Origin: Oikopleura dioica
Lineage: Eukaryota > Animalia > Chordata
Assembly: GCA_907165135.1 (NCBI GenBank)
Contig: OU015568.1
Location: 16,069,208-16,133,207 of the forward strand
Direction of reading: 5' to 3'
Length of the DNA: 64,000 bases
Part shown: piece after piece, positions 1,203 to 57,000 of the stretch
Position numbering within the stretch: position 1 is the stretch's first letter
Layout: the number at the start of each line of letters is the position of its first letter
The notes under the pieces: generated by a model
Databases searched by the model: none
Told to the model about the DNA's origin: nothing
The model's input: only the letters and a program-made list of their open reading frames with translations
Made by a program: the position numbers and the translations under genes

Positions 1203-4200
1203 TTATTGCTGGCCAAGGTTGCTGAAGAGGTCAGAACGGGCCGAGCTTTCGCGAGTTTTGAGCTGAAATACGAGTTATTTACCCCTTTCTCTGAGAAGGT
1301 TATTTACCTTATCAAAGGACTCAATTTTGTTGACAATTGAGTCGATTCTTGAAGCAATTTTAGAAACATGATGCTCGAGTCGATCGACACGACGGGAGAG
1401 AATCGTGAATTCATCGTTGGAGACAAACATCTAACGATTTTTAATAATATGCTTTCAGTTGTCAATTACCTTGTTAAGTTTTTCAAGCATCAGCTCGTTG
1501 GCAAGTGGATTCGAATCGGATGCGAATCCATGATTTTCTGGCTGGTGCATGTCGAAGCCAAGAGCTTCTCCAACTTCTTGTCGATCCTTGTTTCCGGGTT
1601 CAAAGGAGCGTTCAAAGAGCGAGAGTAATCTCAAGTGATCCACTTTTTGAACCGCGATCCTTAACATCATCGATCTCGTCGTTGATCTCCGCTGTCTGCT
1701 TGAGTAGGTCAGCGCGGAGCCTGTTTCGTTCCTCTTTGTTAAGAACCATGTCCCCATCTTTGTCATATTTGGCAAAGACTGCTTCAATCTCAGCGTCGGG
1801 CACGCCCCGAAGTTTAAGGTCAGAGCGCCACTCATCCCAGTCGACTTGATCATCATTGTTCGTGTCAGCTGAGTCCAGGGCATCTTGAATGTCCTTTTTT
1901 GAATGTTAAAAAAATGATGGATCAGTTTTATTAATTCATTTTTAAAACACGGGCCTTGAGTCGGTCTTTGCGAAGTTTGAGTTTTGTGAGCATGCCATTG
2001 TAGCCCTTTTTGATGAAAGCTCCAAGGTCGAATTCAGATTTTCGCGTGGCCAAGTCTTCCTTGACTTCGGAGTATGTATCGTTGATGATGGCCAAGAACA
2101 TGTTGAGCAAGACGAAGAAAACGAAGAACACATAGCTTGTTTTTTATGTCAATCAAATAAACTTGGCCTTGCTTACGTAATGAAAAAGACGGGTCCGAGA
2201 ATATTGTGGGCATTCTCCAACTGGTGAAAGTTGAAATCACCGAGGATGATTCTGAAGAGCGTGTAGACACACTTGTCGAACTTGCTAAAATCTTCGACTT
2301 GGCTTCCAAAAATCAAGAATCCCAGTTGAGTGTAAGCAAGGAAAACGATCAGAAACATGATCATAAATCCCCCAACATCCTTCGCCGAACGAGAAAGAGT
2401 TTCGGAAAGCTAGAAATTGATGAATGAGACGCAATTATGCTCAAAAATATGCGGTGCTTACTTGATTCATAGTTGTGTTAAAGCTGATGTATTTGAAAAG
2501 TTTAATCCAGGCGAGGAAAACCACAATCGCCATGACGTACATGTACTAGAAAAGGTCAATGAGCGCGAATTTTTGAAAAGAATTTAAATTTTAAAAACTT
2601 ACGACTCCTTCCCAATACGCCAAAGATTGGAAGTCAGCATATGAGTCTTCTTGTTTCATGAGAGCATCGAGTTTGTTTTCGATCTCAGTATGTCGGTACA
2701 AACTGAAGATAAAAAATGAATCTTAAGGGGGTAGAAACAGCTTTTTCCGAAAAGGGCGATTTTTGACCGGCGCTACAGACAAGAGAATCTTAAATTTTCA
2801 AATTTTCTCTTCAGGTTTAGATAGATACATCTTAGATCTAAGAACATCTCTCTCGAAATTTGTTTTAGTCGTCAAATTTTTGAGCAAACGGGCTCAGAAG
2901 CAGCTCATCTCTCCGAAATTCTCGATTTTCGCAAATTTTTAAACACGTATATCTCGAGTCCCCTGATAGTTAAACAAATTTCATTCACATTTTTGTGAAG
3001 CTCAACCCTTTTCTAGGAACATTTATGAGGAAATTTCGTGAACATAAATAAATCTTATGTTTTCTTTTATCTAGCTGCAGTCCAAGATCGACAAAGCTGT
3101 TTCTACCCCCTTAACAATACGAGTCAAGCTCTTACTAGAATGAGAAAGCGCAGAGAGACAGGAATATGACGATGACGTCGACGATATTCCAGAATCCTTT
3201 GAAATAAGCGCCCTTGTGGATCTTGATTTCCAAAAATTCCTCGACGCAGTAGTATACGATGAAAGCAATGTAGATGATCTCCGTGGCGAGAATAAAGTAG
3301 TCATATCCTTCTTTGAGTTTGAGGAGCTTGACGGTGCTGAATTTCTGCGAAGTGATGACGCCACCAGTTGCAGGGAACTCAGCGACGAGCTTTACGACGC
3401 AAAATAGGTTGATGTTCGGGTTGTAAACGGTGAAGTCAATGAAGAGTGCGCGTGTTCCTCGGTCGATCCACAGATCTTTCTTCAGATCATGGAGAATCTC
3501 GGTTGTTTTCGTTTTATTTCTTATCATAGAAACGATGAATCTCTGGAGAAACCTTACCGTCCAAGGTCTTTTGTATATCCAGAAGCGGGATAGGTAAACC
3601 CGAGCTTGTCAGATTTGTAAGTTCGTCCTCCAAGCTCATCTTCGGATCGCCAGGCCCATGGACAATCAGAATTGTACTTCCCCGCAGCTTTCAAGAAGCA
3701 TGCAAAAATTGACGCATTTAGCAATTAGTAGAAACTACGCACTATGCTTTCCCATGAATACTACTGGTAGGAGTAGTCGGCTAATACTTAATTGAATACA
3801 ACACGAGTAGTTCACACGATATCAACGATAAATTCACAGTTGGCATGAGAATGCGCGGGAAATTAAAAATATGTGATCAACGGTAAATCTGCGTAAGCGT
3901 GCCATTCCTTGACAGTCTTGATCGAAAGCCCCAAACGGCTCCTTGTCCTCCGAGTTCTTGCCGTAATTCGAGTGGCAGGCCAAAATGTCATCTTTGAAAT
4001 CTTGGTGAACAGTGCAAGAATCGTTTCGGACCTAACAGTTTTTATTACCGCAAAAATCATAAAAATAAGCACCTTTATCTGTCGAATTCGAGGAGCTCCG
4101 AGAAGCTTGTTCTCGAAAAAGATGTATCCAGTATCTTCTTCAGGAATGGCTTCTCCATTGTACCAGTGCTCCCAGTAGAGACCGTCGACGAGCGAGTTTT

Positions 4201-4746
4201 CAGCGTAATCCCAGAACTGATCCATTTGATTCATGCCTTCCCATGTCTGGGGACCGCTCGAGACGAACAGTCTTGAATTTTTAGTAACGTTGATTGTTGA
4301 TAGAAATCTTACTTTTGGAGAACATTTGTGAAGAAAAAGTGTGTTGTCGAGGTGTTTCCGAGTGTCATGATGATGATGTTCACGAGAAAGATGACATAGA
4401 GGATCAACTCGCGAATCGTCGTCTTTGCATACTTATCGGGATTATCTGACAAGTCCTTTTCGGTGAGCCGTGTGGCCCAAAGACTTCGAAAGCCATTTCC
4501 AATTTTACCGAGGATAGATCTATCCTTTTCAAATTTTTCCTAGACAAAAAATTGGGTAATGTTAAAAGAAAAAATACTAACGATTCTCTGAGCATCTTTT
4601 TGTTTTTCTTTGATGATCGAGTCCGTCGAGTCTTCGCGTTTTACAGCGTCAAAGTCGTCGTATGCGCCATTTTCGACGCCAATGTGGCTTGGTTCACCAT
4701 CGTCCGTGGCTTGGCTTGATCCCCCGGCGGATTGAGCACGACCCAT
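1203..4746 (-). CDS. PKD2: Polycystin-2 (PKD2/TRPP) family cation channel, multi-exon
   Basis: Spliced exons give TRPP motifs: [68 protein letters not shown]-hand region (FAKYDKDGD) and C-terminal coiled coil [35 protein letters not shown]; stop TAA at 1203-1205. PKD2 vs PKD2L1 orthology cannot be settled by eye. Confidence 0.93.
2727..3110. mobile_element. TTAA-flanked MITE (Kolobok-like) in a PKD2 intron
   Basis: 18-bp TIR gggggtagaaacagcttt / aaagctgtttctaccccc; TTAA at 2723-2726 and 3111-3114; no coding capacity. Confidence 0.85.
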
Positions 4747-5257
4747 GCAACGAGCACTTCTTTCCCCTTTAACCTGTTTTTTTACTCTAGGACGGAGGTC
4801 AAAATTTCAAACCTTTCTGCTTTACTCGATCTTGTTGAGGAAGTCTTGTGCGCCTGAAAATATATATTCACTCTCCGGAAAACGTTTGGATGCAGCCTTG
4901 AAATAGCCTTCATAAATGGAGGCATTTACATTACAAAGCGAAATTATGAAAAATTCATCGAACTCACGCTGCATGTCGACAATGGACATGGCGTCATTGG
5001 AAATTTTCAATTCAGGTGTTGAATATTCTGTTTCGGGTAATTTTGGTCGTTGCAGATACTGTCATTATTGCCGAAGAAGGCTTTTCCCTTGCTACGACCT
5101 CGTTACCTTTCTTGAATATATTGACATGAAATCTTCTCCAACTGGAGAAAAGCCACATTTCAATATTTACAGATAAAGATTAAATTTCCCTTTTTTCTTC
5201 GCCTTTTCACAGCCAGCTTCAGAATTTCAGTTGAGAAAAGAGTTTAATTCGAAAAAC

Positions 5258-5689
5258 ATGTCTTGGCATAAAATTTTTTGTTGCTGGGTGTCATGCGAAG
5301 ACCCAACAGAAGCAAAGCAGCCAAACAGAGGACAGAATAACAAGTCCTTCAAAACGACAGTCGTTGCTGAAGTAATGGACGAAGCATTCGATCATCAGCA
5401 TGACGTTAAAAAGTATATTGGTCAAGTCGAAGGATATGCATTCAAGACTGCAGCAGATATCATTCAATCCCAGCATCAACTCATTGAGAATCTAAAGCGA
5501 GAGCGCGAAAATACTGCCTCCCCTTCTGCTCCAACTATGTCGACCCTCAATCGAACATTTGAGGCGGATTTTGAGGAAGTCAACCCGTCAAGACAGGAAT
5601 TCATCGCCTCTGAAACTCGTTGCGAGCTGATAGACCTCCTCAGCTGCAAGAAATTACTCAGATTAGTCGGTCCTACTCATATTTTTTAA
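5258..5689 (+). CDS. Small orphan protein, tandem paralog A (N-terminal FCC, central helical segment, PSAP motif)
   Basis: ORF from ATG 5258 (MSWHKIFCC...); clear similarity to 5867-6274 (YAFxTAADIIQSQHQL...SPSAPxMST). C-terminus uncertain because the two copies differ in frame there. Confidence 0.7.
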   Translation: MSWHKIFCCWVSCEDPTEAKQPNRGQNNKSFKTTVVAEVMDEAFDHQHDVKKYIGQVEGYAFKTAADIIQSQHQLIENLKRERENTASPSAPTMSTLNRTFEADFEEVNPSRQEFIASETRCELIDLLSCKKLLRLVGPTHIF

Positions 5690-5866
5690 CGAAACTTCTC
5701 CACTAATTTCTTATTGCTTACAATAAATTTGATTACAAATGAAAACCTCACTCTGCTTTCCCTCTTCCAACATGGTCATGGATTTTAAGGGCAAATATTT
5801 GTGGATAACAGACTGCTTTCCTTTTTTTACTTGCGTGAAATTTAAACAAGGGCCTCATAAACCAAA

Positions 5867-6274
5867 ATGATTGACCTTTTTTGTTGCTATTTTTCATTCG
5901 GAGATCCTTCAAAAACAGATTCTTCTCAAAAGTACAGAGGAACTGATAACCATGCCTTGAATACTCAGGTTGTTGCGAATGTTGTGGACGAGCAATTGAA
6001 GCATGCTGATAATTTGAAAACGTATATCGCTCAAATTGAAGAATATGCTTTCGTGACTGCTGCAGATATTATTCAATCACAGCATCAACTGAATAGCGAT
6101 CTAAAACGACAGCTCGAGAGATCAGGTTCGTCTCCTTCTGCTCCATCAATGTCGACCTTTGACAGGGTCAACCATTCAAGAGAAGAGTTCATCACTTCCG
6201 GAAACGCGCTGATGAGTTCTGGCAGACCTCCACAGTTGCAACAACTCACTCAGATTAGTTTGTCGTATTCCTAA
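5867..6274 (+). CDS. Small orphan protein, tandem paralog B
   Basis: 135-aa ORF MIDLFCC... sharing TAADIIQSQHQL and SPSAP with paralog A. Confidence 0.7.
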   Translation: MIDLFCCYFSFGDPSKTDSSQKYRGTDNHALNTQVVANVVDEQLKHADNLKTYIAQIEEYAFVTAADIIQSQHQLNSDLKRQLERSGSSPSAPSMSTFDRVNHSREEFITSGNALMSSGRPPQLQQLTQISLSYS

Positions 6275-6399
6275 AACTGCAGATTTCTTCTTATTTATTT
6301 CTGATTACAGTTCCTTAATTTACTGCTGATTGCCATCAATAAATTAAATTGCCGATGAATGTAGGGGTTGGATACTGAGAAAATGAATTTTTAATTATT

Positions 6400-7650
6400 T
6401 TGGTCCCCTGGGCCACTGCTGCCCCTGGACTTATCTCATCAAAAAAGCAAGTATGTGAAGGATGAGAGATTTCTGGATTTTACTAGTCTTGCATTTTTAC
6501 TTTGCGAATTGTGATGATAATTGCTATGTTTTGATTTCCGGTGGCAAAATTGACAGGTAATGGCGAAATAATGAAAATAGATACAAACAAAAACATCTAG
6601 TGAGTTTACAGATGAATCGTTTAAAGTCCTGCTACAGAATAATTCTCATCATGGAAACATAGATATCCGCATAGAAAGAGAGCCATATGAGTCGCTTCCT
6701 TCCAGAAGAGCTGGGCATAAGCTCACTCTTTGGCACAATATTCCAATGCTCACTGGTGGGGAAATTTATTCGGCCCAGCGTGAGTTGAACAGTTCGGAAT
6801 GTTACCTGAAAGACTTTCAAAATATAATCCTCGAGAAAGAAGCTCAAGACCCAGCAGCAGGCGAAGAAGTAAGCGTTTGGCAACTGTTACCAGAAATGAA
6901 AGAGGGCCCTCGACAGTATCATACTATGGTCGTCTTTAGAAACAGTCCGTATTCTGGAACAGCTTGGGTCTGTGGCGGAGAGCTTTGGAAGAAAGCAAAG
7001 GCTTCGGGAAAGATGATGTTGGACGTCGTTTCTAGCTGCGAATGCTTCAACAGATATTACATGAAATGGATGCCGTGCCCGACAATGCTCTTTGAAAGAA
7101 AATTCGCAACGAGCGCGGCGACCTACTTTGGTATTTATATGATCGGCGGCGAAGACAAAAAGGGCAGAATCTTGAGCGCTGTTGAATACGTCGAGCCGCT
7201 GGGAGGAGGGAAATGGACGCGCAAAACCAGCCTGCCTGTGCAAGTAAAGGGGCAGCTGCTGTCTGTATTCATGATGAGCTGTTTGTATTCGGCGGCTTTG
7301 ACGGGGAAAAATCAATTGCAAGTGTCTTCTATTTGAACCGGACTAATTGGGTGGACTTTGGTAATTTGCTCTCGCGACGTTCGGGACATACAGTGACAGC
7401 GATGCAATCAACTGTGCTGATCTACGGCGGGGAGGATGATGGACAAATCAAATCTGCTGAAGTGTTCAATATAGATTCGAAGACCACAGGAATGGATAAA
7501 TATTTCTTGATTCTGCAAAAATCAACAATTCAAAATGGTATCCCGGAAAAGAATACATAAAACTTCCCGGATACAAAAGTCTTCGCTACCACGCTGCGGC
7601 GGGTCTAGGCAAAAGTCAATATAAAATAGGCTTTCTATTATTTTTATGAT
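6400..7650 (+). CDS. Kelch-repeat protein (5' and 3' exons approximate; one apparent frameshift)
   Basis: Repeated kelch blades: LPSRRAGH..MLTGG, IYMIGGEDKKGRILSAVEYVEP..W, LFVFGGFDG, RRSGHTVT..LIYGG; reading frame shifts at a G4 run near 7247-7250. Confidence 0.8.
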
Positions 7651-7722
7651 AATAGAATCCTTTTGAAATTGATTTTGAGGGAGGTGCGAAGTGGAGGGCT
7701 ACTTTAATTCGTGCTGCATAAT

Positions 7723-10700
7723 TAGGGCTTCCGTATAAAAAAATTGTTTCTGATTCCGTTCATTGTTTCCTTAAATAATTATGGGAGGGATAAATCAATA
7801 TAAGAAAAGGTTTTTAGGGGCAAAAGAAATAAAAAAAAATAATGTTTGATATCAAAATTATATAAATAAAAATGGTGATTTTTCATTTGTGCGTTGTCAC
7901 TTGTCGATTTTTTTTATTTTTTGATATGTTATAGAGAAACATCAAAAACATAATATTTCATAAAAAAAATTTTGACTGGCCATTTATATCATCAGAAATA
8001 GTAACTTTTAGTAGAAAAATAACAAAGTTATTGTTAAAAAGTCCTCCGGAGGACTTTTGCTGGAAGAAACTATTTAGAAGAAGACATAGAATTAAATTTT
8101 TCAAAAATATATAATATTTCAATATTTAACGCAAAACCATAATTTGCAAATAAACAAGGACAAATTGAATTTTAATAATCATGGGTGTGGGTGGGGTTGG
8201 GGACATAACTGAGATTGATCAACTCAGAGTTCCAGGCCTTTGTCAAGCCCCTTAAATTTAAAAATCATGGAACGGGGCTGAAACGGCCCGAAGGGCCGTC
8301 AAGCCCCTTAAATTTAAAAATCATGGAACGGGGCTGAAACGGCCCGAAGGGCCGTCAAGCCCCTTAAATTTAAAAATCATGGAACGGGGCTGAAACGGCC
8401 CGAAGGGCCGTCAAGCCCCTTAAATTTAAAAATCATGGAACGGGGCTGAAACGGCCCGAAGGGCCGTCAAGCCCCTTAAATTTAAAAATCATGGAACGGG
8501 GCTGAAACGGCCCGAAGGGCCGTCAAGCCCCTTAAATTTAAAATCATGGAACGGGGCTGAAACGGCCCGAAGGGCCGTCAAGCCCCTTAAATTTAAAAAT
8601 CATGGAACGGGGCTGAAACGGCCCGAAGGGCCGTCAAGCCCCTTAAATTTAAAAATCATGGAACGGGGCTGAAACGGCCCGAAGGGCCGTCAAGCCCCTT
8701 AAATTTAAAAATCATGGAACGGGGCTGAAACGGCCCGAAGGGCCGTCAAGCCCCTTAAATTTAAAAATCATGGAACGGGGCTGAAACGGCCCGAAGGGCC
8801 GTCAAGCCCCTTAAATTTAAAAATCATGGAACGGGGCTGAAACGGCCCGAAGGGCCGTCAAGCCCCTTAAATTTAAAAATCATGGAACGGGGCTGAAACG
8901 GCCCGAAGGGCCGTCAAGCCCCTTAAATTTAAAATCATGGAACGGGGCTGAAACGGCCCGAAGGGCCGTCAAGCCCCTTAAATTTAAAAATCATGGAACG
9001 GGGCTGAAACGGCCCGAAGGGCCGTCAAGCCCCTTAAATTTAAAAATCATGGAACGGGGCTGAAACGGCCCGAAGGGCCGTCAAGCCCTTAAATTTAAAA
9101 ATCATGGAACGGGGCTGAAACGGCCCGAAGGGCCGTCAAGCCCTTAAATTTAAAAATCATGGAACGGGGCTGAAACGGCCCGAAGGGCCGTCAAGCCCCT
9201 TAAATTTAAAAATCATGGAACGGGGCTGAAACGGCCCGAAGGGCCGTCAAGCCCCTTAAATTTAAAAATCATGGAACGGGGCTGAAACGGCCCGAAGGGC
9301 CGTCAAGCCCCTTAAATTTAAAAATCATGGAACGGGGCTGAAACGGCCCGAAGGGCCGTCAAGCCCCTTAAATTTAAAAATCATGGAACGGGGCTGAAAC
9401 GGCCCGAAGGGCCGTCAAGCCCTTAAATTTAAAAATCATGGAACGGGGCTGAAACGGCCCGAAGGGCCGTCAAGCCCCTTAAATTTAAAAATCATGGAAC
9501 GGGGCTGAAACGGCCCGAAGGGCCGTCAAGCCCTTAAATTTAAAAATCATGGAACGGGGCTGAAACGGCCCGAAGGGCCGTCAAGCCCCTTAAATTTAAA
9601 AATCATGGAACGGGGCTGAAACGGCCCGAAGGGCCGTCAAGCCCCTTAAATTTAAAAATCATGGAACGGGGCTGAAACGGCCCGAAGGGCCGTCAAGCCC
9701 CTTAAATTTAAAAATCATGGAACGGGGCTGAAACGGCCCGAAGGGCCGTCAAGCCCCTTAAATTTAAAAATCATGGAACGGGGCTGAAACGGCCCGAAGG
9801 GCCGTCAAGCCCCTTAAATTTAAAAATCATGGAACGGGGCTGAAACGGCCCGAAGGGCCGTCAAGCCCTTAAATTTAAAAATCATGGAACGGGGCTGAAA
9901 CGGCCCGAAGGGCCGTCAAGCCCCTTAAATTTAAAATCATGGAACGGGGCTGAAACGGCCCGAAGGGCCGTCAAGCCCTTAAATTTAAAAATCATGGAAC
10001 GGGGCTGAAACGGCCCGAAGGGCCGTCAAGCCCTTAAATTTAAAAATCATGGAACGGGGCTGAAACGGCCCGAAGGGCCGTCAAGCCCCTTAAATTTAAA
10101 AATCATGGAACGGGGCTGAAACGGCCCGAAGGGCCGTCAAGCCCCTTAAATTTAAAAATCATGGAACGGGGCTGAAACGGCCCGAAGGGCCGTCAAGCCC
10201 CTTAAATTTAAAAATCATGGAACGGGGCTGAAACGGCCCGAAGGGCCGTCAAGCCCCTTAAATTTAAAAATCATGGAACGGGGCTGAAACGGCCCGAAGG
10301 GCCGTCAAGCCCCTTAAATTTAAAAATCATGGAACGGGGCTGAAACGGCCCGAAGGGCCGTCAAGCCCTTAAATTTAAAATCATGGAACGGGGCTGAAAC
10401 GGCCCGAAGGGCCGTCAAGCCCCTTAAATTTAAAAATCATGGAACGGGGCTGAAACGGCCCGAAGGGCCGTCAAGCCCCTTAAATTTAAAAATCATGGAA
10501 CGGGGCTGAAACGGCCCGAAGGGCCGTCAAGCCCCTTAAATTTAAAATCATGGAACGGGGCTGAAACGGCCCGAAGGGCCGTCAAGCCCCTTAAATTTAA
10601 AAATCATGGAACGGGGCTGAAACGGCCCGAAGGGCCGTCAAGCCCCTTAAATTTAAAAATCATGGAACGGGGCTGAAACGGCCCGAAGGGCCGTCAAGCC

Positions 10701-11200
10701 CCTTAAATTTAAAAATCATGGAACGGGGCTGAAACCACCAAAAGTCCTCCGGAGATCTCCAAGAAGTCCTCCGGAGGTCACATGATAGCATTATGTTTTT
10801 ATAAATATACATTATTATTGATTTGTTAAATTATTTTTAATTTTTCCATGTCTTCTTCATAAATGCTTCTTCCAGCAAAAGTCCTCCGGAGGACTTTTTT
10901 AAAACAATAAAATCTTAATATCAAGATAAAATCTTATTTTAGATGTTTTATTGCATATGCAATAAATTTTTTTTAAGAAATCTAGGTTTTTGAGTATGCC
11001 CTTTCACATATCTAAAAATTAAAAAAATCGACAAGGGACGAGACGAGAAAATCAGTTTTGTCATTTTAACAATCACGTGCGTGGATAAAATTTTTTTTTT
11101 CACGATGAAAATTTTTTTCCACTGAAAAATACATTCCCTCCCCGAATTTCAAACAATTCGGTCAGCCCAGTTAAAATTTTGTTTTTATACGGAAGCCCTA
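7723..11200. mobile_element. Non-autonomous hAT-like DNA transposon carrying a 56-bp tandem array
   Basis: 19-bp TIR tagggcttccgtataaaaa / tttttatacggaagcccta; perfect 8-bp TSD tgcataat (7715-7722, 11201-11208); subterminal inverted motif aaaagtcctccggaggactttt near 8037 and 10877; no transposase ORF. Confidence 0.9.
8242..10734 (+). repeat. Tandem minisatellite, 56-bp unit, about 44 copies (variant 1)
   Basis: Unit gtcaagccccttaaatttaaaaatcatggaacggggctgaaacggcccgaagggcc repeated head-to-tail; variation seen only in C- and A-run lengths. Confidence 0.98.
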
Positions 11201-11255
11201 TGCATAATTAATGCTCTCTTTTGTGGCTTGCTGCTAATCATCCTCTTGACCTCTT

Positions 11256-12250
11256 CTATCTATATTGGGTTTTGGCGGAGTGATCTGTGGGTTCCACTAT
11301 TGCAAGAGGTTTGTCGACAAAAAATGACGATAATAAAAAAAAATAAGCACAACGCGGAATGCAGAAGACACGAGGAAGAAGAAAAAATGCTCGGCTGATT
11401 TTTACCAAACACTTGTAAATACAGATTTTGTATATTGTTTTTTTATTGCACCTGATTCTGAACAATCTTCAAGTTTTTAATTTTCGTCAGAATAGCATTC
11501 GTTGCTTCGCTATCTACCAGCCCGGTCGGAGTGAGGCCAATGTCCGTGCCGTCGAGGGCAAAACGCGAGGCAGACTTCGTAATTCTCTCAACAGAGCTGT
11601 GATGTTCATGGCGAGCGGAGTCGATAATGTCGGATGTGAGAGCAAGCCCTTGAGGAAGCAGATTCAGCAGCACTGGGATATCGTCGTCGAGACATTTTCG
11701 CAGTCGCATGTATGCGTCGCGCGCTTCTTGCAGATCCTGGTTCGACTGATGCAGTTTTATTTGCTTTTGGCGGTTGTTTCCTGCTTTGGCCGCCAGACGC
11801 TCGTGCTTGGCTTTCTTTTCCATGTACTGTTGCTCGTGGTATTCACTATAAAAAAAGTTCATTCATGAGAAGCGTTAGATTGATACCATCTAGCCATCGT
11901 ACTTTCGATTTTCTTGTACAAAGTGTCGATTCTTGAATTCGGCTGAATAACACACTCCCTTTCTTGCGATAAAGTTAAATACTCAGGTGAACTTGATCTG
12001 AATCCTTTTTATCCCATTTCCTTAGAGTTTTGTCATAAGCCCTCGTCGCAACAGTAATTGCGTCAAAAGCCTGCTTCATGTTCTGCATCTTGGACTCGTT
12101 TTTATTGAGAGCGCAAATGGCTACGATGTTTGACATCGTCTTGTCGAGAGCGCGACAGTTCTCGATTTCGCGTTCGCTGTTCGCAGTCATTTGGCGGTTT
12201 TGAGCTCTTAAATCCGGGCGCAAAACGGTTTTTCTTGTTTTCAATCGCAT
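11256..12250 (-). CDS. BAR-domain protein (amphiphysin/BIN-like), multi-exon; true 5' end uncertain
   Basis: Helical ORFs 11975-12250 and 11443-11862; KLHQSNQDLQEARDAYMRLRKCLDDDIPVL resembles the third helix of amphiphysin-type BAR domains. Confidence 0.55.
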
Positions 12251-12258
12251 TTATTTAA

Positions 12259-12741
12259 CCCTAAGCGTCTCGGTCAGAGCACCCCCTGTGCGGCTCGCGG
12301 GGGAATTTTTTTCACCCGCCCATCTAGAACAATGTTGTGCATTATTTTACGCTTCTTCGAAGCAAAATGCGCTGACTCTCGTGTTATCACAGTCTGGGAG
12401 ACAGAAAATCTTCAATTTTTGGTGTTTTTTAGTCGAGCTAGAGATTGTTATGTAATAATTTTCATGTTCTCGAGTCGAAAACACACCAACTTCACGCGCG
12501 TTCATTCGATTCTCTAGACAAATTTCATGTTCTCGAGACAAAAAATGGTCATTTTCTACTGTTTTTTACGATTTACTCGATGATGAAAAATACTAACATA
12601 TCATTTTTATGTTTTTAGCAGATAGGAAATCTGACGTAGATTCTTATTCTTTTTGAATTTTCTGATTCAGACAAAAATTGGCCGAGAAATTTGCAAAAAA
12701 GAGGCGCGGGGGAAAAAAGTTCCCCCGCGAGGCGCATACGG
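12259..12741. mobile_element. piggyBac-like MITE
   Basis: TTAA at 12255-12258 and 12742-12745; termini ccctaagcgtctcg / cgaggcgcatacgg are imperfect inverted repeats (3 mismatches); second internal IR pair (ctcgcgggg..ttttt). Confidence 0.6.
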
Positions 12742-13195
12742 TTAAGTATCGTATTTGCGACAGATTTCCTGAGACGTTTGAGAGTCTTCAGATGCTCTTC
12801 TGGGATTAGTTTTGTCGCTCTATAATTCCAGACTTAGAAACTCTTGCTCATTCGACTAATTCAAACCTGCTCATTTTCAGTAAAAACGGTTGTTTTTGAA
12901 AAATAAAAGTTCGAAAATTGCCAAATATCTCTTTTTATTTGCTTCTCGGCGCCAATCAAATCCGACACTTTTCAAGTTGGTGAAACTTTGATCGCAGCAA
13001 TCCTGACTCTTGAAATTCAAGTTGAATATGCATCTAGTTGACCATTCAGGCATGAAACAAATGGAAAACTTCTCAATACGGCTGCAATGGAAAGTTTTAT
13101 CGGAGAAATGAATTGGGGAAGAATATTTATTTACAGAAACAGATGAACTGGGTTCGGAACAGACAGGGCACAGACAGAATTTGAATCAGTTGATT

Positions 13196-15061
13196 TCACT
13201 TTTTCTTATCATTATCATTATTTGCATTTGAATCCTTTGGATCTTTTTTCGTCAGTTTTACTCCAGTGACAATCGTGGCATTTCCATTCTTTGTGACTGA
13301 AGGTTTGTGGGTGGGGATGTCCTCTGGTGGATTTTCGACTGTGTTCAAATTGACAACTTTGCTGTCTCGAGGGGGCACTTCTACTTGTTGCAGGAGCTTC
13401 TCGATTTCGAGCTTTTTCTGGTCGACGTTGAGGTTGAAGCTGGGCAAGGGAAGCATGAATTCTCGGCCACGGTGGTCTTTGATCAGAAGGTTTCCGAAGA
13501 AGAGTGCATTTGGCTGCGGGAGCATCGTTGAAGACGTAAACTAAAATTACTGTAGGTCTCAAGCTGGAAACTACAAAATACCTTGAAGATGGGATTTTCA
13601 GGCGTGAGCGTAATACTGCCAATATTTCTCTTTCTTCTGAGATTTGGAGAGCCAGGAATAAAGTCAGAGCCAACATTCAGCCCAGGTCCAGTCTCGATTT
13701 GTTGGTTAGTGTCGTCGCCTTGCCATGTGAAATTGTGGCGTTTTATTTTGTAGTAGACTCCTTCAAACTGGCTGAGGAGCTCGATACGCAGGTGGTATTT
13801 CCAGCAGAATTGGGGGACGATTTGAGCTAGGATCGACAAGTCCCACCCGACACCCGATCGAAAACCGACGTTTTTGTCGGGTTTTTGTTGGATTCTGCCG
13901 ACCCTACAAAAACCCGACGCTGAAATTCTGGCGAACCTACAAAATCGGGTTTTTCTAGGGTCATTTATCGGATTTTTGTAGGGTATTTTCGTCGGGTTTC
14001 TCCTTGGATCTACTCATCAGTTTGATTAAAGATAGTACCCGAAATTCTGTTAGCCAAAAATTCTGTCTAGTTTCGCCGATTTGGATTCATTTTACTTGAT
14101 TCAACTGTAGTGTTGTGAAAACCCGACAAGAACCCGACAAAGACCCGATAAAAACCCGAAAAACACCCTACAAAAACCCGAAAAATACCATACAAAAATC
14201 CGATAAAAACCCGACAAAAACCCGACGAAAACCCGACGAAAACCCGATCGGAAAAGTCAGACTTCAAGGAAATCCGACGAAAACCCGATCCGGATTTCGG
14301 GGGTATTTGTCGATCCTAGGATTTGAGTCTTTGAATTGTAAGCCTAAAATGGTTGATTAATAAAATCAAGGAAGAAAAAATAGCGTACCAAAAACACGGG
14401 TGAAATCGATACTTTGATCCCTTCAGGCCAGCATGTGCGTTCAAACGTACTCAAAGTCTCGTAATTAAAGTAATCGTTCTTCCATTTAAGTAAGTTGCCG
14501 GTTTCCTAAAGCCAATTGTTTTATAGATAAATTAATTTTTAAAGACCTTGGCTTCGCCGTCGAAATCGTAGATAAACTTTTTGTACCAATAGTTGTCGAA
14601 GTCGAAGGCGTCTTTGCTCCTCAATGGGAGTCCGTTTTGGTCGTATCCTTCAAAAGGGTTGTTGACGAATGGACGGATCTCGCGGGGGTCGACGATGTCG
14701 AAGCCATCAACGTTGCGAAGATTGAGCATCGCGTCTTTGAAGATATCCTGCACGAGATGGGTTTCGTGAGTTGGGATGTCGCGTTGGTCGACAAGCGCCA
14801 TGTATTTCACCTGGGAATAGAGAGATAAGGGAAAGGGGGAAGGCTCACCTCGTCGTTCAAAACGTAGTCTTGGGATTTCTCATCGTAGGTATAGCGCGAA
14901 TGGGGGATTTCAAAGAGCACTAGTCCGCGATAATTCAACTTGTCATGCAAGAAATGCTGCCCAACGCTGTAAGAGTTCGAAGCTTCAGTTTTCTTCCCGA
15001 GTTGAACGAATGTCGTCTGTTTCTTGAACGAGTTGAATCGCCGCCCAACTCGACAAAGCAT
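13196..15061 (-). CDS. POLDIP2: Polymerase delta-interacting protein 2 (YccV-like + ApaG domains)
   Basis: YSVGQHFLHDKLNYRGLVLF (cf. YETGQLFLHSIFGYRGVVLF), YMALVDQRDIP, GIKVSISPVFL, FCWKYHLRIE, FFGNLLIKDHRGREFMLPLPSFNL follow POLDIP2 in order; stop TGA 13196-13198. Confidence 0.85.
13827..14319. mobile_element. MITE with CTAG termini and 8-bp TSD, inserted in a POLDIP2 coding exon
   Basis: 13-bp TIR ctaggatcgacaa / ttgtcgatcctag; TSD gatttgag at 13819-13826 and 14320-14327; many subterminal aaacccga(c/t) repeats in opposite orientation in the two halves. Confidence 0.92.
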
Positions 15062-15108
15062 TCTGAAATGGCGAAAGAGGATAATTTTTAATAAAATGGA
15101 AGATTATT

Positions 15109-16483
15109 TTAATTTTTGGCAGCTATCTTTGCAGACGATTGAATCTTCTTTTCTTTTCGTTCTTTCTTGAGTCTTTCGAATTTCTCTCTCTGGAAGATTT
15201 TTCTGTTCTTTTCCTTCAGCGAGTTTTTGAACATTTTCTTGCTCTGGCCTTTTTCGATCATCTGTATCAGCGACTTCTCTTTGGACATTCTTGCTTGATC
15301 GTGTCGGCCCATCATTTTGTTCCGAAAGTCGACGGCGCTCTGGCAGCGAGAATCGATCTTGTCAACGAACCTGCTGGGCATCGCATGAATCCCACGATCA
15401 TCCGGAAACGCGGTCAACTTTTTCTTCGCCGGTCCTAAAGAAGAATTGAGTAGAATGCTCTCTCAAATTATTCTTACGTTTCTTAGATGCCCATTTTATC
15501 TTTCGCTTTCGAGTATTTTCCGATTTCTCAAGGGCTTCGAATATCGCCGGGTTGAGCTCTTCTGAAATGTGGATTCCTTCATCTTCTGGTGTCGATATTT
15601 CATCGTTGTCACTCTTCTGAAAGATAGAGTAAAACGGAATTGCTAGAAAATACTCACCGTGCAGCTGTCAGCGATATTTTCAGCTTCTTCGCCGTCAGAT
15701 TTGATGGCATCGTTCGTTTCGTCACTTTCTTGAGCTTCTTTGACATTTACTGGCGTGCCTTCCGTATTCTCCAAATCTTCTGCTTCAGTTTCTTTATCTT
15801 GAGCTTTCTGTGAATAACTGTTAGATAAAAGATTTAAAACCCTAACGAACCTTCTCTAATTCCTGATTCTCAGTCGAATCTATCTTCTTTTCTTCAGTAC
15901 TTTTCTTCTCAACATTCTCAACAGGAGATTCTGCTTCACCTGTTTCTTCAGAAACGTTTGGTTCTACCGCTTCTTCTTCAGTCACGTCAGGTTCTTGTTC
16001 CGAGTCGATAATAATCGCCGAAGGTTTAAGGTTGACTTTGATAATCGGACTGCTGGCATTGCTGCTTATCGTTTCGTCGGGTTTCTCTTTTTCTTCTGTC
16101 TCCTCGTCTTCCTCAACAATCGCTTCTGGGAGAGAAGGCAGTTTCTGCGCCTCCTGCTCTTGATCGTTTTCGACACTTTGGTTAGACAGCCGTCTCGATC
16201 GCCGAACACTTGGGGTCGATGTCATTGTCTCAGGAAGTGTTTCTTCTGGCTCTTCTTGAACCGATTCCAGATTCTTCAACAGCTTTCGTCGGACTGGCTT
16301 GCTCTCGGCGTCGGATGCTTCGCCGTCTGAACTTTGTCCGGAAATGCGCCTCGATCTTCGTGGAGTCATCACTGCTGGTGTGTCGTTTCTTTTCGTTGGC
16401 GTCGCTGCTTTCTGCGGCGTTTCAGAAATAGTTTTGTTTGCTTCAAAGTCGTACAAGGAAGAGTCCAGCCCTGACTCGCTCAT
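15109..16483 (-). CDS. Acidic low-complexity protein with basic C-terminal domain (possibly nucleolar), multi-exon
   Basis: Long Glu/Ser-rich ORF 15842-16483 with RRSRR motifs, GT-AG introns, and a Lys-rich last exon 15109-about 15435. Family not recognised with confidence. Confidence 0.7.
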
Positions 16484-25185: not shown

Positions 25186-28100
25186 TAGGGATGTGATAAG
25201 AAAAATCGCCAATCTCTAGGCTTTCGTAATCCCCAAATTTTGTTTCTAGGGGGATACTAAGTTTGATCTGGGCTTTCCAAAAAAAATAAAATTTTTGAAA
25301 AATTTAAGGGTCTAGCCCCCAAAAACTCATTTTTTCGTCAAAAATCTTGGTTTTTTGGCCAGCGAGGGACGGGAATCAATATTTTTTCGGTTTTTATTCC
25401 ACCAGCATCTTTTTCAGGACCTTCGACAACCCCAGTGAGTGCATCCCCGAAAAAAAGTAAAATTTGCTTAAGAAAATTTTCGACCGAAAAAAATCAAAAA
25501 TTTTCAATTTTTTCAAAAAACATTTTTTCATTATTAGACACTAATAATATAGGGTCGGGCATTAACTAAACTAAATAATTATTAGCGTTGCCAAGTAAAA
25601 AAATCGACTTCTATCCAAAATGAAGACCATAATTAGTCAATAAACCAGAATAATTTAAATTTTTATAACGATGGGTGTGGGTGGGGTTGGGGACATAACT
25701 GAGATTGATCAACTCAGTGTTCCGAGCCTTTGTCAAGCCCCTTAAATTTAAAAATCAAGGAACGGGGCTGAGACGGCCCGAAGGGCCGTCAAGCCCTTAA
25801 ATTTAAAAATCAAGGAACGGGGCTGAGACGGCCCGAAGGGCCGTCAAGCCCCTTAAATTTAAAAATCAAGGAACGGGGCTGAGACGGCCCGAAGGGCCGT
25901 CAAGCCCTTAAATTTAAAAATCAAGGAACGGGGCTGAGACGGCCCGAAGGGCCGTCAAGCCCCTTAAATTTAAAAATCAAGGAACGGGGCTGAGACGGCC
26001 CGAAGGGCCGTCAAGCCCTTAAATTTAAAAATCAAGGAACGGGGCTGAGACGGCCCGAAGGGCCGTCAAGCCCCTTAAATTTAAAAATCAAGGAACGGGG
26101 CTGAGACGGCCCGAAGGGCCGTCAAGCCCTTAAATTTAAAAATCAAGGAACGGGGCTGAGACGGCCCGAAGGGCCGTCAAGCCCCTTAAATTTAAAAATC
26201 AAGGAACGGGGCTGAGACGGCCCGAAGGGCCGTCAAGCCCCTTAAATTTAAAAATCAAGGAACGGGGCTGAGACGGCCCGAAGGGCCGTCAAGCCCCTTA
26301 AATTTAAAAATCAAGGAACGGGGCTGAGACGGCCCGAAGGGCCGTCAAGCCCCTTAAATTTAAAAATCAAGGAACGGGGCTGAGACGGCCCGAAGGGCCG
26401 TCAAGCCCCTTAAATTTAAAAATCAAGGAACGGGGCTGAGACGGCCCGAAGGGCCGTCAAGCCCTTAAATTTAAAAATCAAGGAACGGGGCTGAGACGGC
26501 CCGAAGGGCCGTCAAGCCCCTTAAATTTAAAAATCAAGGAACGGGGCTGAGACGGCCCGAAGGGCCGTCAAGCCCTTAAATTTAAAAATCAAGGAACGGG
26601 GCTGAGACGGCCCGAAGGGCCGTCAAGCCCTTAAATTTAAAAATCAAGGAACGGGGCTGAGACGGCCCGAAGGGCCGTCAAGCCCCTTAAATTTAAAAAT
26701 CAAGGAACGGGGCTGAGACGGCCCGAAGGGCCGTCAAGCCCCTTAAATTTAAAAATCAAGGAACGGGGCTGAGACGGCCCGAAGGGCCGTCAAGCCCCTT
26801 AAATTTAAAAATCAAGGAACGGGGCTGAGACGGCCCGAAGGGCCGTCAAGCCCTTAAATTTAAAAATCAAGGAACGGGGCTGAGACGGCCCGAAGGGCCG
26901 TCAAGCCCCTTAAATTTAAAAATCAAGGAACGGGGCTGAGACGGCCCGAAGGGCCGTCAAGCCCTTAAATTTAAAAATCAAGGAACGGGGCTGAGACGGC
27001 CCGAAGGGCCGTCAAGCCCCTAAATTTAAAAATCAAGAAACGGGGCTGAGACGGCCCGAAGGGCCGTCAAGCCCCTTAAATTTAAAAATCAAGGAACGGG
27101 GCTGAGACGGCCCGAAGGGCCGTCAAGCCCCTTAAATTTAAAAATCAAGGAACGGGGCTGAGACGGCCCGAAGGGCCGTCAAGCCCCTTAAATTTAAAAA
27201 TCAAGGAACGGGGCTGAGACGGCCCGAAGGGCCGTCAAGCCCCTTAAATTTAAAAATCAAGGAACGGGGCTGAGACGGCCCGAAGGGCCGTCAAGCCCCT
27301 TAAATTTAAAAATCAAGGAACGGGGCTGAGACGGCCCGAAGGGCCGTCAAGCCCTTAAATTTAAAAATCAAGGAACGGGGCTGAGACGGCCCGAAGGGCC
27401 GTCAAGCCCTTAAATTTAAAAATCAAGGAACGGGGCTGAGACGGCCCGAAGGGCCGTCAAGCCCCTTAAATTTAAAAATCAAGGAACGGGGCTGAGACGG
27501 CCCGAAGGGCCGTCAAGCCCCTTAAATTTAAAAATCAAGGAACGGGGCTGAGACGGCCCGAAGGGCCGTCAAGCCCCTTAAATTTAAAAATCAAGGAACG
27601 GGGCTGAGACGGCCCGAAGGGCCGTCAAGCCCCTTAAATTTAAAAATCAAGGAACGGGGCTGAGACGGCCCGAAGGGCCGTCAAGCCCCTTAAATTTAAA
27701 AATCAAGGAACGGGGCTGAGACGGCCCGAAGGGCCGTCAAGCCCTTAAATTTAAAAATCAAGGAACGGGGCTGAGACGGCCCGAAGGGCCGTCAAGCCCC
27801 TTAAATTTAAAAATCAAGGAACGGGGCTGAGACGGCCCGAAGGGCCGTCAAGCCCCTTAAATTTAAAAATCAAGGAACGGGGCTGAGACGGCCCGAAGGG
27901 CCGTCAAGCCCCTTAAATTTAAAAATCAAGGAACGGGGCTGAGACGGCCCGAAGGGCCGTCAAGCCCCTTAAATTTAAAAATCAAGGAACGGGGCTGAGA
28001 CGGCCCGAAGGGCCGTCAAGCCCTTAAATTTAAAAATCAAGGAACGGGGCTGAGACGGCCCGAAGGGCCGTCAAGCCCCTTAAATTTAAAAATCAAGGAA

Positions 28101-29101
28101 CGGGGCTGAGACGGCCCGAAGGGCCGTCAAGCCCTTAAATTTAAAATCAAGGAACGGGACTGAGACGGCCCGAAGGGCCGTCAAGCCCTTAAATTTAAAA
28201 ATCAAGGAACGGGGCTGAGACGGCCCGAAGGGCCGTCAAGCCCCTTAAATTTAAAAATCAAGGAACGGGGCTGAGACGGCCCGAAGGGCCGTCAAGCCCC
28301 TTAAATTTAAAAATCAAGGAACGGGGCTGAGACGGCCCGAAGGGCCGTCAAGCCCTTAAATTTAAAAATCAAGGAACGGGACTGAGACGGCCCGAAGGGC
28401 CGTCAAGCCCTTAAATTTAAAAATCAAGGAACGGGGCTGAGACGGCCCGAAGGGCCGTCAAGCCCCTTAAATTTAAAAATCAAGGAACGGGGCTGAGACG
28501 GCCCGAAGGGCCGTCAAGCCCCTTAAATTTAAAAATCAAGGAACGGGGCTGAGACGGCCCGAAGGGCCGTCAAGCCCTTAAATTTAAAAATCAAGGAACG
28601 GGGCTGAGACGGCCCGAAGGGCCGTCAAGCCCTTAAATTTAAAAATCAAGGAACGGGGCTGAGACGGCCCGAAGGGCCGTCAAGCCCCTTAAATTTAAAA
28701 ATCAAGGAACGGGGCTGAGACGGCCCGAAGTGATATATTCGAAAAAATGAAAATAAAAGATTTTGAAAAAAAAGTGAAAAATTTCAAATTTTCAAAAAAA
28801 AAAAATTTCTGTAGTGAAAATTTTTTTTACGCCGGGATGCACTCACTGGGGTTAGAAAATGTGGCGAAGAAGATGCTGTCGCTGAAAAAAGGCCAAAAAA
28901 ATTGTCCAAATTTCCTCGCTGGCCAAAAAACCGATTTTGGCCATTTTTCGGATTTTCAAATTGAAAAATCTCAGCGATGCCCTTAGGTAATCGATTTTTT
29001 TTTGGCCGTCATGTTTTTCGGGGTCCCAAAGAACCTAGAAAAATAGTCGGAGGTACCCCCTTAAGGTATTTCTAGGGGTCGATTTTCTTATCACAGCCCT
29101 A
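25186..29101. mobile_element. Second non-autonomous hAT-like element carrying the 56-bp array
   Basis: TIR taggg(a/c)tgtgataagaaaa; perfect 8-bp TSD agaaaaca (25178-25185, 29102-29109); inserted about 70 bp after the ABCA stop codon. Confidence 0.9.
25732..28730 (+). repeat. Tandem minisatellite, 56-bp unit, about 53 copies (variant 2)
   Basis: Unit gtcaagccccttaaatttaaaaatcaaggaacggggctgagacggcccgaagggcc; two fixed differences from variant 1 (tcaagg vs tcatgg, ctgaga vs ctgaaa). Confidence 0.98.
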
Positions 29102-31739: not shown

Positions 31740-32700
31740 CTCCAATAGTCGATCTTATCATAGAGCAAGTTTTCTATTTGCGATCGGCTTCATCTTTCCA
31801 GGTCCAACAAACACGCGCCCTTCCTGAATCGAGCCACTAATGAGGAATCAACCCACTGCTAAAATAAACATAAACTGCATCCCTTTTTTATGTAATCAGC
31901 TGTCGCCCCGATTTTCGTGTAACTCATACTGTGTCGATAAGAGTTTGAAGATTTCATGGTATCGGGTGTAATCGGCTTCGATTTCATTGTTATCGCCAAC
32001 TGATGTTTGAAAAAAACGGCGCGCCGCCACGCTGGGGGAGGTCAGACAAACTTGTGATCAATCAAAAATCATATGACACCAAGATGATGCTGGGTCAAGG
32101 AACCTGAGCCACGGACAACTTGAGGTGCAAAGAAACAGTACTTATTCTTTCGCAAGTTTTATTGAGTTTTAGATAATATATTCTGTTGCAAAAGTTTCTT
32201 TTTCGATCATATCGGAATTTTCAAACAGCGCTTTCTCCACTCATACCCTAACCCTAACCCCAAACCCTAACCAGAAACCCTAACCCTAACCTTAACCCTA
32301 TCAAAGCCTAATTTATCCGGTCCCTTAGGAGTCACAATTTTATTTGATAGTAAATATAACTTAGAAAAAGCTCTAGGGCAACCATTTGTTAACTCGGGGA
32401 TACCCTTAAATTTTCACAGTTAAATCGTCAAATAGCTACATATAGATACATTCACGGTCAAGGAATCTGCCAAAGTTCTTCTTGATGTGAAAAAAGAGTA
32501 CTGAAGTCATTTTTAATATGATTTTTATTGCGATAGTGTTGGTGGCAGAAGGGCTGTTTTTTTTTGAAATGATCCATGCTTCTCTGAGTCCGGCAATCAT
32601 CGGCAGATTCGTTTTTTTTCTTCTTGAGGCGCATCATATATCTGTTGAGCCTTTTTGGTATCTTACCTGTGCCAGTTTTTTTTATTTTTTAAAACGCCCC
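31740..32700 (-). other. Fragmentary exon-like segments of a possible orphan gene or pseudogene
   Basis: Short open segments bounded by GT/AG (e.g. VGDNNEIEADYTRYHEIFKLL; ISGSIQEGRVFVGPGKMKPIANRNLLYDKIDYWSIKLE) that I could not join into one open frame. Confidence 0.25.
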
Positions 32701-54003: not shown

Positions 54004-57000
54004 ATGCAAGTTTCAACGCATCCAAAAGGATTAACAAGAGAAGCTGTTGCGAAATGGCTGGAAGATTTTAAAAAGAAATTGAAAAGAACGACGAGCAGAG
54101 ATGATTTGGATAGACTGATTTTGTCGGTGGAGAGATACGATTTTAAATTAGATTTTCATGCTAACTGGGAGGCGGTTATTTTTAAAAATGGAAAAGGAAA
54201 AGTTCTTGGTAGACAGACTTGGTTGTCAGAAGAATGGGAAATAACTTCATTTCAAAAAATGATCCTCGACAAAAATCCGCAACTCGAAGGTCGAATAATT
54301 AAACGCTCAGAACTAATAGAGGAAACCGGACAATGGATTATCGACGAATTTCTTCAGCAAAATTTAATTTCAGCCGGAGGAGAAGCGATTGTTCTTGAAG
54401 ACAAATTTGGAGAATTGGAAGGGGCCGTTCGGGTTCAGGTTTTTGATTCGGCGCTTTTTACGGGGAAAACTGAAGAAATGGAATATGAAATTAATCTTTC
54501 GGAAGGTATTTTTTATTTTTTAAAATACAGTCGTTACGCACGGTTAGCGGACATTATAAACAAACGGACATTATAAACAAACGGACATTATAAACAAAAC
54601 GGACATTATAAACATTTTTTAATTTATGAAAATCAGAACGGACATTATAAACAAAACGGACATTATAAACAAACGGACATTATAAACAAAATAAAAAATG
54701 TTTATAATGTCTGTTTGTTTATAATGTCCGTTTTGTTTATAATGTCCGTTGTAACTTTCAGAAATTCAAGAAATGTTTATAATGTCCCTTTTGTTTATAA
54801 TGTCCGTTTCGGAATTCCATTGGAATCGTTACAAAGGATAAACTATACACATTTAAAGTGACCCTCCCTGGAGAAAACTTTTTCGAAATAAGAATCGAAA
54901 AAATTTAACCTATGATAAAATTTTTGATTAAGAAAGTCTACCCCTTCTAACGCAATGATTTTGCTACTTAAAAATGCAAGTCTACTCGAGGATTTGCTGT
55001 CAGATTGGTGATTCGCGCCTGTCAGAAGGTGAATTTATTCACAGATTCCTGTGCCCCTAACCACGGGGCTACGCCCCTTAGGTCCTAAAATGCCGGGGTC
55101 TAGTCTATGGTTACTTAGGGTTACCTTCGGTATCCCTAACTAACCCTAGCCTATCCCCCTCGGGTGAGTTAGTTCTGTCATTTTGCCCAGTGCCCCTAAC
55201 ACTAACCTCAAATTATAGATAGTACATATTGCTAAAATGATAAAATATATACTATCTATAAATTATAGATAGTACATATTGCAACAAATGGGCGAAAATT
55301 TCTAAGCTTTCGAAAGACTCCTTATATGGCTTATTAAGATGACAATAAAAAACCGAAAAAAATCGGATTTTCATGCTAGCTAAGTACAATTAATATGCAT
55401 TTTTGCAATTTTTGAAGGCCAAAATCTCGGGGATAGATGTTCGTAAGGGGGTCATGTGACACATCAAAATGATCCTCAGAAAACTGGGAATCTTAAAATG
55501 TCAAACATAGACCCTTATCAAAGAGTTGAAAAAACAGGCGGTATCCCTTAAGTGTGTATAGTTTATCCTTTGTAACGATTCCAATGAAATTCCGAAATTG
55601 CAAACGGACATTATAAACAAAAGGGACATTATAAACATTTCTTGAATTTCTGAAAGTTACAACGGACATTATAAACAAAACGGACATTATAAACAAACAG
55701 ACATTATAAACATTTTTTATTTTGTTTATAATGTCCGTTTGTTTATAATGTCCGTTTTGTTTATAATGTCCGTTCTGATTTTCATAAATTAAAAAATGTT
55801 TATAATGTCCGTTTTGTTTATAATGTCCGTTTGTTTATAATGTCCGTTTGTTTATAATGTCCGCTAACCGTTACGCACAATTCCGGACACTTTTTTTTTC
55901 AGCAAAAAGGGCCAAATGTCCGGAATTGTGCGGATTCTAGATGGAAAAAATTTTTGTTTTCAAAATGCTTGTTTTTTATTCAAAACGTAAAATATCGAGA
56001 AAAAAGCAGAAGCCAGAAAAGCCGAAGAAACAAGCAAGCATTCTTAGTTTTTTTGCAAGAAAATGATCAAGTAAAATAAATTTCAGTTAATGTTTCTCCT
56101 TGGATTTTATTGTGACATGTTTCGATCTTTGTTAGATCATTTTCAAACTAAAGAACAGCTACAGTAAGTCACAAATAATAGGGAGGGGCTCGAAACAATT
56201 CTGCATGCAGAACTATTCTGCAAAAAAAAGAACTATTCTGCAAAAAATGGAACTATTCTGCGTTTCGCACAACTATTCTGCCGAGTGCAGAACTATTCTC
56301 AAAATGTAGAACTATTCTGCAAAATACAGAACTATTCTGCACGAAAGCAGAACTATTCTTTATATCCAGAACTATTCTGCAATATAAAGAACTATTCTGC
56401 ATTTCGTGAATATAGCACGCGACAGGCCTTCGGCCCTTACGCGCGCATTTTCTGGTAGGAAACTCATTGGGTTGGCAGGGGCAGTCTTTCTCTACCGCTG
56501 GGACTCCAATCTTTCGGAAATTTGAGTCTTTTTGGTGTTTATTTGTGCTTATATCCGTTTTGGCGGATGCAGAACTATTCTCCGGAAAATGCAGAACTAT
56601 TCTGCATGCAGAATTATTTCGATCGAATAAGGGCGAGATTTGATCGAAACAATTCTGCATTTTGCAGAACTATTCTGCATGCAGAATTGTTTCGATCGTT
56701 TCCCAAATAATAGGAGAAAAGAATACCTTTGAGTTGTTATGAATTTTAAATAGGAAAAACGCAATTGAACAGAAAAAGCGAGGTGCAGTTGTTTTTGAGA
56801 TGGAGCAGCTCCTCGCTTTTTCTGTTCAGTTGCGTTTTTCGTAAATTCATAACGACTCAAGGGTATTCTTTTCTCCTACTACTTGTGACTTACTGTAGCT
56901 GTTCTTTAGTTTGAAAATGACTCTAACAAAGATCGAAACATGTCACAATAAAATCCAAAGAGAAACATTCAATCTTGGTCAACTTATACGATATAAATTT

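Follow-up and report, generated by a model that had tools for sequence, protein, structure and literature searches.

A non-autonomous transposon of 493 nt, one copy of a multi-copy family, has inserted with exact boundaries into a coding exon of a POLDIP2-like gene on the OKI2018_I69 reference haplotype of Oikopleura dioica, and every other sample that could be read at this site carried empty alleles. We favor the reading, to which we give a probability of about 0.55, that this is a recent and still polymorphic cut-and-paste insertion of a non-coding foldback MITE, tolerated by way of an intact allele and giving transcripts that are processed heterogeneously. Splicing of the element as a new intron may also occur, but the data can be explained without it.

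The locus lies in record OU015568.1 (PAR) of GCA_907165135.1, the Okinawa O. dioica assembly OKI2018_I69, of which a stretch of 64,000 nt was analyzed as a whole (hereafter the window, to which all coordinates refer). The POLDIP2-like gene, public model OKI2018_I69.PAR.g13011, occupies 13196..15061 on the minus strand and was rebuilt as five exons (15061-14849, 14810-14547, 14505-14389, 14343-13582 and 13540-13196), separated by four GT-AG introns of 38-45 nt each whose canonical donors (GTGAGC, GTCTTT, GTACGC and GTATTT) are weak past the GT. Sequence comparison identifies it as a POLDIP2 orthologue: human POLDIP2 (6z9c) was the top PDB sequence match of the Bergen orthologue CBY18960.1 (E 2.2e-05, residues 28-323), a match that is weak but collinear, and the UniRef name of the same Bergen protein is ApaG domain-containing protein. 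Pfam searches with single exons and with full-length proteins of the gene gave 0 matches, and an AlphaFold2 model built on a 9-sequence alignment was discarded (mean pLDDT 33.6). When aligned with human POLDIP2, the insertion site falls in a stretch holding a one-residue gap, just ahead of a conserved strand.

Two observations concern the architecture of this gene. The insertion lies 24 nt downstream of intron 3 (14344-14388, minus strand; 45 nt), which is also present in Bergen-type DNA, where the P0010 fragment reads through it; ORF fragments from more distant Oikopleura lineages (P0003 and P0004) are uninterrupted at this position, and the intron may be lineage-specific. Upstream of the gene (15062-15112, minus strand), a neighboring gene stops ~50 nt short of the POLDIP2 start codon, and tttcag stands ahead of this codon, an arrangement typical of Oikopleura operons, with a putative trans-splice acceptor.

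In line with the original prediction that a POLDIP2 coding exon harbors a MITE, exon 4 (14343-13582) is divided into two pieces, 14343-14320 and 13818-13582, by the 493-nt element at 13827..14319. Its ends form a perfect TIR pair (CTAGGATCGACAA ... TTGTCGATCCTAG; 13/13), the left TIR CTAGGATCGACAA lying at 13827..13839 (plus strand; 13 nt, 0 mismatches) and its perfect complement at 14307..14319 (minus strand), where the gene strand carries the proposed AG|GA donor; when extended to 34 nt the ends still match at 76%, and the observed match count was reached by 0 of 100 shuffles. Outside the TIRs stands an exact direct repeat of 8 nt, GATTTGAG (CTCAAATC on the gene strand), with one TSD copy at 13819..13826 and the other, the same at 8/8 positions, at 14320..14327, and it is at these copies that the empty sites are joined. 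Internally, an 11-nt subterminal motif (AAAACCCGACA) repeated ~12 times in tandem (14118..14247, plus strand) makes up one foldback arm, and inverted, looser copies of the same motif (13870..13999, minus strand) make up the other, as seen in self-matches and in the RNA fold. The longest ORF of the element has 81 aa, and a homologue search with it returned nothing. Altogether, the features by which a MITE is recognized were all found: TIRs, a TSD proven by empty sites, and a small, non-coding, multi-copy body.

Repetition of the element was assessed from contigs of two DNA runs, X25 and X30. Depth was 2000-13700 over the element and ~355 over the flanks in X25, and 1600-8900 and 98, respectively, in X30, values that were summed over contigs and that give copy number only roughly (several- to tens-fold above the flanks). 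Loose contig ends at 13825/13827 carried differing flanks, and several contigs left the element exactly at 13827. Such depth, together with these exits into different flanks, shows that the element belongs to a multi-copy family and that its boundary was placed correctly. Self-comparison of the 64,000-nt window found no second copy in it. TIR near-matches at 1578, 3082, 36757 and 38293 have neither a partner end nor the repeat motif and were rejected as chance; the TIR pattern also had 12 matches of ~18-26 nt in JGI contigs, mostly G+C-rich ones and with the rest of the element absent, which were likewise taken as chance (bacterial).

Other repeats were noted in the window. Two big arrays, 15 kb apart (8242-10735 and 25732-28730) and both G+C-rich with a strong AT skew, are built from one common 56-nt satellite unit (~45 and 54 copies, 98-99% matches), and a short, interstitial and degenerate telomere-like ACCCTA run (~9 units) lies at 32245-32300. 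At 54548-54809 and 55602-55863, ~0.8 kb apart, a 17-18-nt repeat (CGGACATTATAAACAAAA and its complement) forms two mirror-image arrays, which are arranged like the arms of another foldback element, larger than the first.

Both alleles of the POLDIP2-like gene were recovered from X25. The filled allele is represented by a contig (14307-14739) that spans the right junction with 0 differences to the window at a depth of 162, and the empty allele by a contig joined at 13818|14320, from which exactly 501 nt are absent, at a depth of 194. The empty-allele haplotype shows 39 differences in 420 nt (~9% diverged), flank variants stand at ~54% of depth, and linked exonic variants include 13645, 13672, 13786, 14395 and 14401; X25 is possibly a pool and not one animal, which leaves heterozygosity of a single individual unproven. 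X30, which bears another organism label, displayed the empty site only, on a 2541-nt contig that is ~6% diverged and joined at 13819|14321. The empty site, reading CTCAAATT|GTCCCC, was also seen in two wild metagenome contigs of this lineage from ENA (L014 and L015). Sequences of Bergen type, namely genomic fragments (P0010) and a spliced mRNA found in a JGI metatranscriptome (P0007 / L001), run through the insertion site without interruption. The search for empty-site alleles in other samples, which the original prediction had called for, was therefore successful in X30, L014, L015 and, alongside the filled allele, X25; exact look-ups of reference-haplotype ORFs found no filled allele on record elsewhere. 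Since the natural empty sites lack exactly 501 nt, the element must have been truly inserted, with duplication of an 8-bp target site, and since its TSD copies (8/8) and TIRs (13/13) are still identical, the insertion is young. It is also polymorphic, and an intact allele accompanies it in the sole sample that shows it, so that conservation of the gene gives no reason for obligatory splicing.

The POLDIP2-like frame contains 8 in-frame stops if the element is kept. Removing the element and one TSD reopens it (399 aa), as had been anticipated, and so does removing a candidate GA-AG intron at 13827..14315 (minus strand; 489 nt; GATCGACAAA...TCGATCCTAG), which would leave CTAG plus the TSD, that is, 12 nt encoding LAQI, in a predicted frame of 403 aa that reads ...KTQILAQIVPQF... 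across the site. AG|GA and the 3' AG are both present, T stands at +3, and this splice is the smallest in-frame solution that retains every native residue. Of the three phases to which the original prediction extended this arithmetic, barring newly created stops, two proved open: when the scar was simulated over the whole CDS, phases 0 and 1 were always stop-free (396/396 in each), but phase 2 never was (0/397), because a scar made of CTAG plus the TSD reads ..C TAG in that phase. The actual insertion is in phase 0 (chance odds of 2 in 3). Around the element, 340 G*-AG pairs can be drawn, with 115 in frame and 53 stop-free, so that chance alone would be expected to offer a solution in frame, and its existence gives no selective evidence.

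Transcripts were looked for in several collections. Two oligo-dT RNA runs of 2026 with the same species label, X5 and X6, yielded 11 and 6 partial reads, all on the 11-nt repeat only and none 99% alike, and 0 reads at a likeness of at least 90% on the POLDIP2-like gene; these runs are probably from another cryptic O. dioica lineage. The predicted GA-AG junction CAAATCCTAG|CTCAAATCGTC had 0 matches in JGI contigs, and in the protein collection the gene had no Okinawa-lineage protein derived from a transcript, the protein search for transcripts having returned the Bergen-type mRNA, genomic fragments and the public model. A splice-site weight matrix made from the window's ORF-joining GT..AG pairs had flat columns and was dropped as too noisy.

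The public model g13011 deals with the element in another way, with a GT-AG intron of 513 nt at 13772..14284 (minus strand; donor GTTTTC). Of the junctions tried, a skip of 513 nt alone reproduced its deposited protein, P0032 (395 aa), and the sole G*-AG reading of this skip is GT-AG 14284..13772; the protein retains 12 residues from the element end (LGSTNTPEIRIG) and loses 16 native residues, VPQFCWKYHLRIELLS. If the model were correct, this canonical intron would be used and the 12 element residues would replace the 16 native ones. We consider this highly improbable, although the model does account for the deposited protein and comes from an annotation built with RNA-seq hints (PMC8008620): all Oikopleura relatives found conserve the stretch that it removes, this stretch is aligned with the conserved YWWRYCIRLENL strand of human POLDIP2, and its donor GTTTTC is one of many alike within the element. 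Empty-allele reads placed on the filled reference would, moreover, mimic a CT-AG intron of 501 nt and could have led gene prediction to settle on the closest in-frame pair that was permitted. g13011 is probably an annotation artefact in which, as we infer, an allowed splice pair was forced around a heterozygous insertion. That the insertion is itself an assembly or somatic artefact, absent from the germ line, is barely credible; it is seen in one haplotype only, but the independent short-read contig of X25 crosses the right junction without a difference at about half of the locus depth, and an exact TSD and TIR pair is the signature of real transposition.

More weight has to be given to the reading in which the element is spliced as the GA-AG intron 14315..13827, so that CTAG and the second TSD stay, LAQI lies in a loop of a functional protein and the family is an orientation-independent introner. 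The 403-aa frame would be open with all native residues spared, and the site aligns to the human POLDIP2 stretch with the one-residue gap, but the selection argument does not apply to a polymorphic insertion beside an intact allele, and one of the three phases would always bring a TAG stop. GA-AG introns, whose splicing in Oikopleura the original prediction had noted, are common in O. dioica, where they outnumber GC-AG introns, and the CTAG end provides the exonic AG that is conserved before their GA; the +3 position is nevertheless T instead of the conserved A (PMC7072748). Non-canonical introns make up 11% in OKI2018_I69, yet at 489 nt the candidate would be ten times as long as introns of this genome usually are (PMC8008620). 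Also in favor of the splice, the gene's own canonical donors are weak beyond the GT. Rival donors are many, with 38 GT dinucleotides on the gene strand of the element, and in the predicted fold of the element RNA (-216.6 kcal/mol, z -10.4) a long hairpin is closed by a 13-bp TIR stem that covers both proposed splice sites. Considering these GT dinucleotides and this stem, a clean and efficient new intron is less likely. The same arithmetic is found in Aureococcus Introners (PMC9860276, Fig. 2F-G); here, a single exonic copy is known, and the junction is absent from reads and contigs (X5/X6, which do not cover the gene, and JGI contigs). We regard splicing of this kind with a functional product as unlikely, though a serious contender. 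The broader proposal that these CTAG-ended foldback MITEs work as a family of orientation-independent chordate introners, whose phase 0/1 exonic copies would be cut at AG|GA...CTAG| while the genes survive with four extra codons, and that the POLDIP2 allele is an intron birth segregating in a laboratory animal, seems decidedly doubtful to us.

According to our preferred reading of a recent insertion tolerated beside an intact allele, the presence of that allele, in a heterozygous animal or in a mixed sample, would be what makes the carrier allele tolerable, and reliable splicing would not be the cause. Filled-allele transcripts would probably be processed heterogeneously: some of them may be spliced at AG|GA...CTAG| by the permissive spliceosome of Oikopleura, with LAQI added in the loop, and much of the output of this allele would be expected to be non-productive. 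Several points weigh against this reading. Efficient splicing could still take place, the RNA runs being without cover of the gene, and the AG|GA context fits the exonic side of the published O. dioica GA-AG consensus (PMC7072748). The weakness of the gene's canonical donors past the GT suggests that Oikopleura may need no strong donor, and since transcription reaches the 5' site well ahead of the sequence that pairs with it, the stem may leave this site unblocked. In addition, the two alleles of X25 may come from a pool instead of a single animal.

At present, the locus provides a young exonic transposon insertion known from one haplotype only. If carriers do splice the element, it would offer a segregating and datable intron gain in a culturable chordate; filled and empty alleles are both available for allele-specific RNA tests and crosses, and the step from transposon to intron would, if the reading is true, be testable in an animal. 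A practical result is that g13011 very probably encodes an artefactual protein, with 12 transposon-derived residues in and 16 conserved ones out.

Compared with transposons in general, the element resembles foldback or hAT-like MITEs in its short perfect TIRs, its arms made of inverted arrays of short subterminal repeats, its many copies and its lack of coding capacity. hAT transposons create 8-bp TSDs and have TIRs that start with YARNG. The TSD of the element agrees with this class in length, but its TIRs start with CTAGG, which fails the YARNG consensus as generally given, and no transposase partner was found.

Among introns of its own species, the candidate intron is like the published GA-AG class, which has a conserved exonic AG before the GA and an A at +3, in having an exonic AG before its 5' GA and a 3' AG, and unlike it in having T, not A, after the GA (PMC7072748). 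Introns of OKI2018_I69 have a median length of 49 nt (PMC8008620), whereas the candidate would have 489 nt and be strongly self-paired. The closest appendicularian case is Fritillaria borealis, for which MITE-derived non-canonical introns were reported (Henriet et al. 2019, as summarised in PMC11282704). According to that summary, these introns share with the element an appendicularian host and borders marked by TIRs and TSDs, and transposon insertions are neutralised there by a permissive spliceosome of U2 type; the Fritillaria introns are, however, mostly AG-AC/AG-AT and supported by RNA, whereas the O. dioica element is a polymorphic allele with a predicted GA-AG intron (PMC11282704).

The arithmetic itself has its precedent in the Introners of Aureococcus, where 4 nt plus an 8-nt TSD give 12 nt and four residues (Gozashti et al. 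2022, PMC9860276, Fig. 2F-G; cited there to Huff et al. 2016). Like the element, these Introners resemble DNA transposons and have an 8-bp TSD, and the element would likewise supply both splice sites and leave 4 nt plus the TSD. Splicing has been documented across the family of genic Aureococcus Introners, whereas it is predicted for the element, of which one exonic copy is known; moreover, its donor would be a non-canonical GA, and its host is a chordate. Thus, the idea of 4 + 8 = 12 nt and four codons is already known, and it is a polymorphic GA-AG version of it in Oikopleura that would be new.
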